Sequence record: MN794232.1
Strand: one strand, 5' to 3'
Length of the DNA stretch: 64,000 nt
This document shows, one piece after another, positions 24,099 to 64,000 of the stretch (position 1 is its first letter; every line of letters starts with the position of its first letter). Below the pieces are notes generated by a model. The model ran no database searches, had not been told where the DNA came from, and saw only the letters and a program-made list of their open reading frames with translations. A program made the position numbers and the translations under genes.

Positions 24099-24174
24099 AA
24101 AGGGTTGACTACGGTCAGCCCTTTCTTGTATTATTCTCATATCGAAACGAAACACCGAAAGAGAGAATAATATG
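24099..24174 (+). promoter_or_regulatory. Early promoter stem-loop cassette
   Basis: AAAGGGTTGAC-TACG-GTCAGCCCTTT hairpin holding TTGACT, then TATTAT and ATCGAAACGA...GAGAG leader; first 36 nt identical to 59910-59945. Confidence 0.8.
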
Positions 24175-37860: not shown

Positions 37861-38466
37861 ATGAAAAGAGTTGAGTTACACAAGAAAGTGGTAGACAAGC
37901 AAGCTGTTCTGCCAGATCATTCCCATGTACAAGTTGAGACGTATTACCACACGTACAAGGGTTACATGAATTATCTAACTGGTTTGCGTGGTGTAGAAGG
38001 TGATCAGTATCTACTTGTTACAGATGATGGTCGTTTTGTTCGAGTAGAAGAGAAACATCTAAACGGTCAAGAGCAGAAACAGCGCAAGATCAGTGGTGGT
38101 TTAATTGATGTACGAGCGCGACTGGGGTTGAGTGGTAAAGATCCAGATTGGTATGACTGTATCTGGCGTAATGGTAAGATTGTTTACAAGTACCGCGAGA
38201 CAGATTTCGTTACTGAAGAACATGAGCTAGTGGTTGGTGAGATAGTAGACATTTATGAGTCTAACGACTTTAATGGTGATTATCCGCATGATGCTACAGT
38301 GGTGTTATCTCGACCGAAGCAGATGGTGCTTGAAGCGTATGGTAAACTAGTAGTGTTTACAGTGCCGAAAGAGCCATGTGGTGATAGTTTAGTCTCTGAC
38401 TGTGGTGATTATCGTATTGCTGGTAATTACGCCGCGAGTGAATACGACGAAGAACTGCATTCGTAG
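37861..38466 (+). CDS. Hypothetical protein
   Basis: 201 aa. Confidence 0.75.
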   Translation: MKRVELHKKVVDKQAVLPDHSHVQVETYYHTYKGYMNYLTGLRGVEGDQYLLVTDDGRFVRVEEKHLNGQEQKQRKISGGLIDVRARLGLSGKDPDWYDCIWRNGKIVYKYRETDFVTEEHELVVGEIVDIYESNDFNGDYPHDATVVLSRPKQMVLEAYGKLVVFTVPKEPCGDSLVSDCGDYRIAGNYAASEYDEELHS

Positions 38467-38469
38467 TAG

Positions 38470-38505
38470 AAAGGGTTGACGCTTGTCAGCCCTTTTTTGT
38501 ATCAT
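38470..38505 (+). promoter_or_regulatory. Early promoter stem-loop cassette
   Basis: AAAGGGTTGAC-gctt-GTCAGCCCTTT with TTGACG and TATCAT. Confidence 0.75.
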
Positions 38506-38525
38506 ACGGGTTTTAGGAGAAGATT

Positions 38526-39569
38526 ATGGCTAGAATTAAATGGACACTTGAGTTAATAAAAGAAGACGCTTTAAAGTACAAGACTCGTGGTGAATGGCAG
38601 AAGAAGTCCATTAGTGGTTATACTGCTGCTCGACGACGTGATGTGATTGATGAGTGTTGTGCTCATATGACAGATGTAAAGAAGCCGAGTGGTTATTGGA
38701 CAATCGAACGTCTTAAAGAAGATGCATTGAAATACAAGACTCGCAGTGAATGGTTCGAGAAATCTAGTGGTTATTTGACTGCTCGTTCGCGTGGATTGAT
38801 TGATGAGTGTTGTGCTCATATGACAGAACATACAAAGCCGAATGGTTATTGGACAATCGAACGTCTTAAAGAAGATGCATTGAAATACAAGACTCGTAGT
38901 GAATGGGCCAAGAAATCTAGTGGCGCTTATGATGCTGCCCTACGTCATGATATGCTTGATGACTGTTGTGGTCATATGAAGACAGATGTCAAGAATTTAT
39001 CAAAGCGTTGCATATACCGTATCTATTCTGGTAATGAGATTTACATTGGGTTGACGTATAACGCGGATAGACGATTCGACGAGCATCGTAAGGGGACGCC
39101 ACAGATTGTAGATTTAATAGAGCGAGTTGGTATTGAGAATGTGATTTTCGAGCGATTGACTGACTACATAGAACCAGTACTTGCTCAGATTGCAGAGAAA
39201 GAACACATCGAGCACTATGAAAGTGAAGGTTGGGTTATTTTGAATCGTGCCAAGGGTGGTAGTCTTGGTGGTGATAGATTGCATTGGACAACTGAACGTA
39301 TTAAAGAAGATGCGTTGAAGTACAAGACTCGTAATGAATGGAAGAATAAATCTAGTGGTTATGGTGCTGCCGGAAGACGTGGTATAATTGATGAATGTTG
39401 TTCTCATATGCCCGCAAAGTATAAATGGACACTTGAGTTAATAAAAGAAGACGCTTTAAAGTACAATACTCACAATGAATGGCAGAAGAACTCTGGTGGT
39501 TATGATGCTGCTCGAAGACGTGGTATACTTGATGAGTGTTGTGCTCATATGCCAAAACGAGCCAAGTGA
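38526..39569 (+). CDS. GIY-YIG endonuclease flanked by five ~47-51-aa repeats
   Basis: Central CIYRI...IYIGLT...RRFDEH; WT.E..KEDALKY.T..EW...DECC.HM three times before and twice after. Confidence 0.82.
   Translation: MARIKWTLELIKEDALKYKTRGEWQKKSISGYTAARRRDVIDECCAHMTDVKKPSGYWTIERLKEDALKYKTRSEWFEKSSGYLTARSRGLIDECCAHMTEHTKPNGYWTIERLKEDALKYKTRSEWAKKSSGAYDAALRHDMLDDCCGHMKTDVKNLSKRCIYRIYSGNEIYIGLTYNADRRFDEHRKGTPQIVDLIERVGIENVIFERLTDYIEPVLAQIAEKEHIEHYESEGWVILNRAKGGSLGGDRLHWTTERIKEDALKYKTRNEWKNKSSGYGAAGRRGIIDECCSHMPAKYKWTLELIKEDALKYNTHNEWQKNSGGYDAARRRGILDECCAHMPKRAK
38691..38896 (+). repeat. 53-bp identical direct repeats 153 bp apart inside the endonuclease gene
   Basis: 38691-38743 equals 38844-38896; also 45 bp at 38537-38581 equals 39422-39466. 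Confidence 0.85.
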
Positions 39570-39582
39570 AAATAATTGAAGA

Positions 39583-39659
39583 AAGTGGTTGCACGGGGTA
39601 GCCACTTACTGTATTATCTCTATATCGAAACGACATCGACTAACAGAGAGAACATTATG
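39583..39659 (+). promoter_or_regulatory. Early promoter cassette
   Basis: TTGCAC-17 bp-TATTAT inside an AAGTGGTT/AGCCACTT hairpin; 35 nt identical to 40377-40411. Confidence 0.78.
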
Positions 39660-39938
39660 TTTAACCAAGTAGAAAGCAAAATCTGTGAATTCAAGACACG
39701 CATCGAAGCTAACGAAGAGCCGACTATCGTATGGCCCGAGTTAGCCGAGTACATCGAATCGCTATTGAAATTCGCTGGTGTTACTATTGGTTGGGGTGAT
39801 TTCAATGAAATGATTATTGAACATATCTCTAGCTGGGAAGATGTATCGTGGGAATACACTGAAGCGCGTTACCAGCCAAACAACATTGAGCTTGTGAAGT
39901 CTATTCTATTGCCATTTGCAGTGTTCAAAAACTACTAA
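39657..39938 (+). CDS. Hypothetical early protein
   Basis: GAGAGAACATTATG start. Confidence 0.75.
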   Translation: MFNQVESKICEFKTRIEANEEPTIVWPELAEYIESLLKFAGVTIGWGDFNEMIIEHISSWEDVSWEYTEARYQPNNIELVKSILLPFAVFKNY

Positions 39939-39961
39939 TTCGCCAAAAAAGAGAGAAAATT

Positions 39962-40351
39962 ATGCAAAATAACACCGAAATTCGCCGTGTAATCAGCGAA
40001 AAAGCACTTGAATTACGTCAAAACACCGAGATTTTGAGTGATGACGACTCTTACACGTGTCATATTCTTGAAGATCACGTTGCTGACACGCTTGGCGAGC
40101 ATTGTCGCTTAGAAAGTATGCTTCTCATTCATGAGCTAGGTATTGCTTTTTGTAAGCATGTACGCGCTGAGCCAGAAGCTGTTTTCGGTCGTGAATTGAA
40201 CTCAACCGTGCTTGAATACATCGACGAGATACTTACACACAAGCTTACTGCATTTGTACATAGCATTTCGCGTGCATTTGGCGATGACGAAGGTATTGAG
40301 TTTGCAGATGTGCGTAAAGCATGGTTAAAATTCTTGATTAATTCACTATAA
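39962..40351 (+). CDS. Hypothetical protein (paralogue set B)
   Basis: C-terminal FVHSISR...RKAWLKFL. Confidence 0.75.
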   Translation: MQNNTEIRRVISEKALELRQNTEILSDDDSYTCHILEDHVADTLGEHCRLESMLLIHELGIAFCKHVRAEPEAVFGRELNSTVLEYIDEILTHKLTAFVHSISRAFGDDEGIEFADVRKAWLKFLINSL

Positions 40352-62590: not shown

Positions 62591-63223
62591 ATGAAGATCA
62601 ACAAGTTTCAAGTAGACGGCAAGCCGTTCTTGATGATTGATGACTTTCTACCTAGTGAAGTTGTTGATGAAATCGAGAACACGTTAAAATCAATTAACGA
62701 TTGGGATCACGCCGACAACATCTTTGACTTCAATACGATTGTCAAAGACAAAACCGCGATACTGCAAGGTGACCAATATCGTTTGCGAACGGGTGTGTTA
62801 GCTGAACTCGCAGAATCGACGCTCGACCGAATTCTTGAAATACTCGAAATTGAATTCGGGTGCAAGTATGACAAGTCAGAACTTCGCAAAATAAACGAAT
62901 GGGAATATGCGTTTCGTTTTAATACATCGTATTATGAAAAAGTAAACGATGAAATGTTGTTTCATTATGACAGCAAAGGCGTAACATTCATGTATATGCC
63001 ATGTGAACAACACGACGACGGTACGTATTTCTTCGCTGACGGTGATCGTGACAAGCACGTATACACACTGAAACATAAGCGCGGGTCAGTTGCGATATTC
63101 AATGCAAGCGATATTATGCATTGTAGCGCAAAACCGTCGCCGCTTGATGACTACCGATACACTATGGTATGGCAGTTTGTGTTCCCGTCTCATCTTAAAC
63201 CAATTAGAGAAGTAATCGCATGA
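62591..63223 (+). CDS. 2OG-Fe(II) oxygenase, paralogue 1
   Basis: IDDFLP, HYD, GTYF, RGSVAIF...H, RYTMVWQF. Confidence 0.8.
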   Translation: MKINKFQVDGKPFLMIDDFLPSEVVDEIENTLKSINDWDHADNIFDFNTIVKDKTAILQGDQYRLRTGVLAELAESTLDRILEILEIEFGCKYDKSELRKINEWEYAFRFNTSYYEKVNDEMLFHYDSKGVTFMYMPCEQHDDGTYFFADGDRDKHVYTLKHKRGSVAIFNASDIMHCSAKPSPLDDYRYTMVWQFVFPSHLKPIREVIA

Positions 63224-63834
63224 AATACGACAAATTTCAAATCGACGGGTGCGCGTTTGTATTGATTGAAGACCTATTGCCAGAAGATTTAGTTGAAAAA
63301 CTCGACAAAGCAATGAAGAAAGAACTTGCATGGCAACACGACGACAACATTTTTAAGTTTTGTCATTACGTTAAAGACCGTTCTGCAACGCTTCAAGGTG
63401 ACATGTTCGAACTTGCCGATGACCAAGAGTTGACTGAACTTTCAAATCAACTTTTACAGCATGTTCTGAATTTCATCAAATCCGAGTTCAATCACGAGTT
63501 CACGATTGAAGAACTAAAGCCAATATTTTCACGTGAACGAATTCACCGATACAAGCCGCATTACTACGACAATGCAAAAGGTAACCTGCTGTATCATAAA
63601 GATGCATGGATGACTATTTTCTACATGCCAGATGCGTATGCAGATGAAGGCACTCATTTTTATGCAAATGAAGACCCAGAGCAGCTTGTGTACACGCTGA
63701 AGCACAAACGTGGTATGATCGCATTATTCAACGGTGACATTCTACACGCACCAGCTAAGATGTCAGAAACAGACACGAATCGAATTGTGTTGACTATGCA
63801 GTATCATACCCACATTCAAGACATAATCTCATAG
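63220..63834 (+). CDS. 2OG-Fe(II) oxygenase, paralogue 2
   Basis: IEDLLP, HKD, GTHF, RGMIALF...H, RIVLTMQY. Confidence 0.8.
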   Translation: MKYDKFQIDGCAFVLIEDLLPEDLVEKLDKAMKKELAWQHDDNIFKFCHYVKDRSATLQGDMFELADDQELTELSNQLLQHVLNFIKSEFNHEFTIEELKPIFSRERIHRYKPHYYDNAKGNLLYHKDAWMTIFYMPDAYADEGTHFYANEDPEQLVYTLKHKRGMIALFNGDILHAPAKMSETDTNRIVLTMQYHTHIQDIIS

Positions 63835-63841
63835 GTGATAC

Positions 63842-64000
63842 ATGAACAGCCACAGAGCAGAGATCATCCAATTGAAACGACGTGTTTCTAAGCTAGAAGA
63901 ATTGGTGAAAACTCTCATAAATCGTGACGTTACACCCCGTAACGTTTTCGATGAAGAAGACGAGCACATTTCATTACATCCCGTTGATGACACATTCGAT
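63842..64000 (+). CDS. Hypothetical protein, truncated by the window edge
   Basis: AGGTG RBS; open to the end of the window. Confidence 0.55.
   Translation, partial: MNSHRAEIIQLKRRVSKLEELVKTLINRDVTPRNVFDEEDEHISLHPVDDTFD

Follow-up and report, generated by a model that had tools for sequence, protein, structure and literature searches.

What kind of enzyme is encoded by a phage gene in which a nuclease domain is enclosed, on both sides, by copies of the same short helical unit? The gene in question occupies positions 38526 to 39569 of a stretch of 64,000 nucleotides, referred to here as the window, which belongs to the genome of Vibrio phage VH1_2019 (MN794232.1; Schizotequatrovirus, KVP40 species, T4-like); the two are 100% identical over a compared 2 kb, and window positions equal record positions minus 62,000. 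In GenBank its 347-residue product is labelled 'hypothetical protein' (QHJ74358.1), and nothing more. An earlier note on this DNA had described three repeats, a GIY-YIG nuclease and two further repeats within one open reading frame (ORF), and this description is confirmed with its coordinates exact and its five repeats in frame. The protein is likely to be a mobile GIY-YIG endonuclease equipped with repeated, putatively DNA-binding modules; that it is more specifically an endonuclease of the homing type, free-standing and with a modular binding array of a new kind, is the reading we favour, although our confidence in it is only about even. The parts of the gene are as follows (aa, amino acids; the repeats were placed by DNA and protein repeat comparison and by the structure model).

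38526-39569, plus strand: coding sequence of a GIY-YIG nuclease within a 3+2 array of four-helix repeats; 347 aa, single ORF
38541-38669, plus strand: repeat 1, aa 6-48
38697-38822, plus strand: repeat 2, aa 58-99
38850-38978, plus strand: repeat 3, aa 109-151
38979-39284, plus strand: GIY-YIG catalytic core and short tethers, aa 152-253, recognized by its fold match to I-TevI (1ln0) and by conserved residues
39285-39410, plus strand: repeat 4, aa 254-295
39426-39551, plus strand: repeat 5, aa 301-342

The central domain carries the features that define the GIY-YIG superfamily, namely the paired motif on a beta hairpin, downstream Arg, His, Glu and Asn residues, and a superposable fold. In an AlphaFold2 model of the 347-residue protein, built from an alignment of 88 family members (mean predicted local distance difference test score, pLDDT, 92.9), the signature C-I-Y164 and Y173-I-G175 lies on strands 161-168 and 171-177. 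The core superposes on the catalytic domain of I-TevI (1ln0) with a Z of 9.7 and a root-mean-square deviation of 2.3 over 80 residues (Foldseek probability 1.0, TMt 0.72). Weaker fold matches are T4 EndoII (Z 6.0), UvrC (Z 5.9) and Slx1 (Z 4.0), and a restriction enzyme specific for 5-hydroxymethylcytosine (5hmC) is also among the matches of the fold search; the nearest predicted viral structures outside the repeat family are Seg-like and group I intron endonucleases. Y164, Y173, R183, H187, E224 and N240 are candidates for the catalytic residues. Across 86 relatives of the window protein Y164, Y173, G175 and R183 are invariant, and E224 (86/87), N240 (85/87) and H187 (74/86, replaced by Arg in the others) are nearly so. 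Given an I-TevI-type fold with conserved active-site residues, the core is very probably a catalytically intact endonuclease of the I-TevI type and is predicted to be active. Its score against the Pfam GIY-YIG model (PF01541) is 19.2 bits, below the cutoff of 22.6 (E 1.5e-3; N-terminal third only), and the relatives P0014 and P0104 pass this cutoff with 31 and 38 bits; the window protein is thus a divergent member of the superfamily. A search with the nuclease core by itself did not find short relatives.

What, then, is the unit that surrounds this core? Each repeat is a mini-domain of about 43 residues with four short helices, which the model places in repeat 1 at residues 8-15 (A), 21-27 (B), 29-37 (C) and 41-44 (D). 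The repeat ends in C-x-H-M and is followed by a linker of 5-10 residues (consensus ..KP.GYW). The predicted template modelling score (pTM) of the full-length model is 0.54 and its confidence falls at the linkers; the model suggests that the repeats are independently folded beads on a string, not a rigid solenoid. A two-repeat model built without an alignment was unusable (pLDDT 48). Among 704 repeats from 120 proteins, W9, A18, H50 and M51 are conserved at 94-99%, while variation within a protein is highest at consensus positions 25, 28, 32, 33, 36, 37, 39 and 40, which lie in helices B-C. About 8-10 positions vary per repeat, and the repeats of the window protein are 63-77% identical to one another. 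Basic positions 20, 24 and 40 are conserved and adjoin the variable helix faces. The arrays are mildly basic (isoelectric point, pI, 9.0-9.4) and the core has a pI of 6.1. At window positions 38001-40000 the GC skew reaches 0.25 against about 0.05 in the rest of the window, at an ordinary GC content (0.41), and this is probably due to the amino-acid composition of the repeats and not to a foreign origin.

Automatic annotation of such arrays can mislead. Because short matches to every repeat add up, the curated Pfam cutoffs are passed by SusF_SusE (39.7 bits) and Insulin (31.7 bits) on window positions 38526-39566 and by UL128 (63.5 bits) on relatives, and all three were rejected as artefacts. 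Matches to IGF-I among solved structures (E 0.04-0.4, '...GIVDECC') were likewise set aside as chance resemblance, as with Insulin. False Pfam matches were seen on the window protein and on the relatives P0003 and P0004, and PF00049 'Insulin' is precomputed on several phage proteins of the repeat family, where it is a source of mis-annotation. Another precomputed accession, PF26058.1, recurs on the repeat arrays of many relatives; neither the Pfam copy used nor the papers searched contain it, and it could be a model of the four-helix repeat that was built recently. Sequence and profile searches of solved structures returned nothing for the query, for the repeat profile or for two other fusion types.

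The history of the array can be read from its DNA, in which the repeats appear as five in-frame 128-nt copies that are 63-82% identical to the reference copy. Exact duplications of 53 and 45 bp had been taken in the earlier note as signs of a recent expansion. The longest exact duplications are indeed 45 bp (38537/39422) and, for the other pair, 54 bp and not 53 (38690/38843), but the inference drawn from them fails, for the identical tracts are confined to helix A and helices B-C of the same repeat pairs are only 67-79% identical. Repeats 2 and 3 share 98% identity in helix A and 67% in helices B-C, whereas repeats 4 and 5 show the reverse (73% and 86%). The nearest partner thus differs between segments of one repeat, which points to recombination between repeats, and the segment-wise pattern of identity describes a mosaic made by recombination, in which the scaffold is conserved and the B-C faces diverge. 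Judged by these identities, the array is not the outcome of a recent duplication of whole units but of patchy recombination. Contigs from three public DNA runs of one study, which possibly represent the source sample, cover the gene with no differences listed, although no single contig piece spans the whole stretch; this agreement argues that the repeats are not an assembly artefact. None of the RNA runs searched contains the gene.

The repeat is not peculiar to this phage. A profile search of the repeat, which the earlier note had put forward as a check, was made with the five window repeats against 1.84 billion representatives, and it matched 6,094 clusters (50% identity) at E<=1e-3, 3,914 at E<=1e-10 and 1,159 at E<=1e-30, with up to 14 repeats per protein. 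Family members come from Vibrio, Rhizobium and Burkholderia phages and one uncultured 636-kb phage, as well as from cellular sources (Vibrio, Photobacterium, Shewanella, Colwellia, Carboxylicivirga, a Rickettsiaceae bacterium and an archaeal metagenome-assembled genome). A model for the repeat was not found in the copies of Pfam, NCBIfam and PADLOC searched, the PHROG family containing the window protein family has no known function, and no paper on the repeat or on the repeats-nuclease-repeats architecture was found in the literature searched. A GIY-YIG domain is present in 88 of the 120 best full-length matches, the remainder being mostly repeat-only. The earlier note had remarked on a departure from the usual layout of an N-terminal catalytic and a C-terminal binding domain, and this departure recurs throughout: the nuclease sits inside the array in 86 of the 88 proteins, in most cases with 1-5 repeats on its N-terminal and 2-9 on its C-terminal side, and is N-terminal in only two.

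The other partners of the repeat bear on its function. In four metagenomic proteins (P0046, P0182, P0195 and P0197) a restriction-endonuclease-like domain of 130 residues is embedded in the array in the same 'sandwich' position; that of P0046 matches PADLOC mREase_II (4.4e-5) and Pfam PvuRts1I-like (4e-3). Another partner is a C-terminal domain of 120 residues with an E-F-N-G-x-x-W-H motif and weak REase_MTES_1575 matches. SF2 helicases (ResIII/DEAD/Helicase_C) carry 5-11 C-terminal repeats in P0154, P0163, P0200, P0258, P0286 and P0307, and P0280 combines five repeats, an SNF2 helicase and a Methyltransf_8-like domain, in that order. Since the repeat is joined to several unrelated nucleic-acid enzymes, it is most simply seen as a nucleic-acid-targeting module, and from these associations we infer that it binds nucleic acid, probably DNA.

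How the gene came to lie at this locus is best answered by comparison with related phages, for which the following features are needed.

38506-39581, plus strand: cassette of 1,076 bp holding the 347-aa gene, delimited by comparison with KVP40
38468-38505, plus strand: upstream PeSL, an A3G3-loop-C3T6 stem-loop overlapping an early-type promoter TTGACG-N18-TATCAT (fold -18.1 kcal/mol, z -4.7)
38515-38519, plus strand: Shine-Dalgarno AGGAG, 6 nt upstream of the ATG, read from the sequence
39583-39617, plus strand: downstream PeSL, with a stem-loop at 39583-39607 and a sigma-70-like promoter TTGCAC-N17-TATTAT at 39589-39617 (fold z -3.1)

The promoter cassettes that the earlier note had seen on both sides of the gene, each a stem-loop with a sigma-70-like promoter, correspond to published PeSL promoter/terminator repeats. 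In the nt-1/KVP40 pair these consist of an A3-4G3-loop-C3T3-4 stem-loop overlapping an early promoter TTGYVH-N17-TAWWAT (PMC4122927). The right element fits the published motif exactly, and the left one reads TTGACG-N18-TATCAT with an A3G3/C3T6 stem. The downstream PeSL probably terminates the 347-aa gene and promotes the next one. Both elements are also recombination boundaries: homology to KVP40 stops at 38505, just past the -10 box, and restarts at 39582, so that both junctions of the cassette fall inside PeSLs. In place of the 1,076-bp cassette KVP40 has a 401-bp segment with an unrelated ORF, KVP40.0175, between flanks that are 94-98% identical. This ORF of about 120-139 aa (MFNATTVL...) lies at KVP40 100201-100620, allelic to window 38506-39581, and is also found in V07, PG216 and TCU-VP03; phi-pp2 has a diverged version of it. 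Further PeSL-like elements, with promoter starts at 24105, 36084, 40367, 46145, 56544 and 59916 and the motif AAAAAGKGG-TTGMNN...TATTAT...CATCGAAACGA, are scattered along the window, which accords with a hyperplastic region of a KVP40-type genome.

Where the upstream gene is 97-99.5% identical, VH1_2019 is the only one of the listed phages to carry the nuclease. One or two copies stand directly after the homologous upstream gene in Va3, R11Z, PVA23, phi-Grn1, phi-ST2, VH7D, R10Z and XZ1, and the layouts at this locus in Va3-type phages are 3+3, 4+2, 2+3, 1+4, 2+2 and 1+2. Between VH1_2019 and Va3 the synonymous divergence (dS) is 0.39-0.44 in the cassette, 1.07 in the upstream gene and 0.37 in a downstream gene, and such unevenness marks the region as a mosaic. 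The core, with a ratio of non-synonymous to synonymous divergence (dN/dS) of 0.21, and the N-terminal array, with 0.42, are both constrained, and the array evolves faster.

Elsewhere the family is equally scattered. Rhizobium phage RHph_Y60 has three members, adjoining helicase/dCMP deaminase, primase and portal genes; its relative Y52 has a single member, and the two remaining sites are empty or taken by another gene in relatives. The DNA primase is flanked by family members on both sides in RHph_TM3_3_9 (63193-63951 and 66401-67165) and has one on a single side in RHph_Y60 (64445-65203), with none there in Y52, Y21 and Y5A. Bacterial copies stand alone: a Rickettsiaceae bacterium, for example, has one between tonB and rpsB, and in Photobacterium one adjoins an IS91 transposase. 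A patchy, solitary occurrence is what free-standing homing endonuclease genes usually show, and a homing-type life style is plausible for the 347-aa gene.

Under the reading of a homing-type endonuclease, the parts would work together as follows. An optional cassette, expressed early in a KVP40-type Vibrio phage, would supply an intact I-TevI-type nuclease, whose single catalytic domain is predicted to be tethered by linkers of about 10 residues between a three-module and a two-module array. The modules would bind DNA, with the conserved basic and hydrophobic positions as a scaffold and the variable B/C faces giving each module its own short sub-site. The two arrays would jointly recognize one long, asymmetric site and so position the nuclease above the DNA that separates the half-sites; its lone GIY-YIG site may then nick one strand after the other, like that of I-TevI and I-BmoI. 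The gene itself would be a free-standing selfish element that spreads and turns over by way of the flanking PeSL repeats. A bolder proposal goes further and sees in the 43-aa unit a new, widespread sequence-reading DNA module, which would use its helices B and C to contact a few base pairs, be freely combined beside nucleases and behind helicases, and form arrays that could be rebuilt to aim a compact monomeric nuclease; we regard this as possible but rather doubtful.

Several observations weigh against a homing-type, DNA-reading enzyme. The very different repeat layouts at the same locus are odd if one conserved site is recognized. Individual repeats carry little net charge (about 0 to +4), and no solved DNA-binding fold matched the repeat in the whole-model structure search (best Z 3.4). 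Recent co-conversion from a diverged donor could leave a gradient of divergence, and none is seen beside the cassette in the comparison with KVP40; boundaries that lie exactly in PeSLs mean that PeSL recombination alone explains the swap with KVP40. No experiment on the repeat family, or published description of it, was found in the literature searched.

Some of these points, together with others, lend themselves to different explanations. The gene might be a working phage weapon and not a selfish element, its arrays aiming the nuclease at host DNA, competing phages or satellites in the manner of T4 EndoII or of Odn, a domesticated nuclease of ICP1, with the phage's own 7-deazaguanine-modified DNA perhaps spared. 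Such a role would suit the intact active site, the purifying selection on the gene, the early promoter in front of it and its place within a hyperplastic region of accessory genes; T4 EndoII and the 5hmC-specific enzyme are among the fold relatives of the core, and domesticated endonucleases with swapped binding domains have been documented (PMC10448857). We nevertheless think this unlikely, as the gene is missing from the other listed KVP40-species phages and hence dispensable, solitary copies among bacterial housekeeping genes look selfish and not defensive, and PADLOC gave no match to the window protein. It is more improbable still that the repeats do not read DNA at all, and instead bind RNA or protein or act as spacer or scaffold while the nuclease finds its substrate otherwise. 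The modest charge, the unmatched fold and the widely varying layouts would agree with this, and SF2 helicases can act on RNA as well as DNA, but the restriction-endonuclease-like, GIY-YIG, SNF2 and methyltransferase partners are mostly DNA enzymes, and the conserved basic positions border the helix faces that vary.

Two further ideas concern how a repeat might be built or read. The Cys/His ends that the earlier note had stressed could make each unit a small zinc-binding module. In the 704 repeats His50 is conserved at 99% and Cys48 at 83%, and Cys14, Cys48 and His50 occur together in 61%. Against this, position 14 is Cys in 74% and Leu, Ile or Val in 25%, with Leu or Ile in all five window repeats, and position 47 is Cys in 43% and Ile or Val in 51%. 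The two positions do not compensate for each other (Cys47 in 41% of repeats with Cys14 and 47% of those without), 122 of the 704 repeats (17%) have at most one Cys, and the four conserved ligands per unit expected of a zinc finger are never seen. As the Cys positions swap with Leu, Ile and Val, a canonical zinc site is unlikely; the pattern at positions 14 and 47 fits residues of a buried core and not zinc-finger ligands, and we hold a metal-binding module to be a distinctly remote prospect. The remaining idea, of a code like that of zinc fingers or of transcription activator-like effectors (TALEs), in which a few residues of each repeat would specify a set number of bases and swaps would re-program the cut site, has least to recommend it and seems to us very improbable. 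Repeat number is free to change between orthologues (1+2 to 4+2), the scaffold is conserved with variation largely within helices B-C, and recombination between repeats is implied, all of which such a code would accommodate; yet some 8-10 variable positions per repeat and 63-77% identity within the protein are unlike TALE repeats, and flexible linkers with a low pTM give no fixed superhelical register. The proposal in the earlier note of re-programmable DNA-recognition modules on both sides of the cut therefore survives in part: nucleic-acid modules are made plausible by the fusion partners and the B-C variation, whereas a simple code is not.

The present analysis adds the allele with one copy in VH1_2019 and what takes its place in KVP40, the location of the junctions in PeSLs, the fusions to helicases and to restriction-endonuclease-like domains, the study of the cysteines, the mosaic of the repeats by segment and the size of the family. 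As the family has at least 6,094 clusters and no model in the database copies searched, the characterization of one member would annotate thousands of genes.

Compared with known systems, the window protein resembles I-TevI and the Seg-type homing endonucleases of T4 in its catalytic fold and residues, in being encoded by a free-standing phage gene that is patchy among close relatives, and in having one nuclease domain tethered to separate, here putative, binding modules. It differs in that its nuclease is central (aa 152-253 of 347), while theirs is N-terminal with a C-terminal binding domain, and in that its array is a tandem of an unnamed four-helix unit; NUMOD, IENR, zinc-finger or helix-turn-helix domains were not detected in it, and TIGR01453 scored 14.8 bits against a cutoff of 56. 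The closest published concept that we found concerns a GIY-YIG subfamily, the T5orf172 endonucleases, whose CapR/DUF723/DUF4379 zinc-finger modules are repeated like 'beads on a string' and undergo recombination in their nucleotide sequence (Barth et al., 2023, PMC10448857). Both have a GIY-YIG-related nuclease, beaded putative binding modules, repeats visible at the nucleotide level, recombination between repeats and a variable repeat number, and both are present in Vibrio phages. The window nuclease, however, has repeats on both sides, and its repeat has no CxxC...CxC motif; T5orf172/MUG113 and DUF723/DUF4379 gave no Pfam matches at E<=1 for the window protein or at E<=10 for repeat-only relatives.

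The cassette, for its part, resembles the PeSL-bounded cassettes of T4-like phages (PMC2839356, PMC4122927) in having PeSLs of the nt-1/KVP40 type at both ends with the junctions inside them. The cargo of those cassettes consists mostly of small ORFans (Arbiol, 2010, PMC2839356; Comeau, 2014, PMC4122927), whereas here it is a nuclease that could itself promote exchange. A nuclease carried in a PeSL cassette links two known drivers of mosaicism in T4-like genomes.

With TALE and TALE-like arrays the window array has in common tandem helical repeats of near-constant length, localized variation and a variable copy number. TALE repeats are near-identical units of 33-35 aa that differ at two specificity residues. 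The window unit, in contrast, has 43 aa and a linker of 5-10 aa, four helices, many variable positions and far lower identity, and its array shows no sign of a superhelix or of a correspondence of one repeat to one base; the idea of a programmable code of the TALE kind finds no support. If the repeat does read DNA, it would be the fourth natural modular scaffold after zinc fingers, TALEs and the CapR/DUF723 fingers of the T5orf172 enzymes, and one already joined to a small monomeric nuclease between two half-sites.

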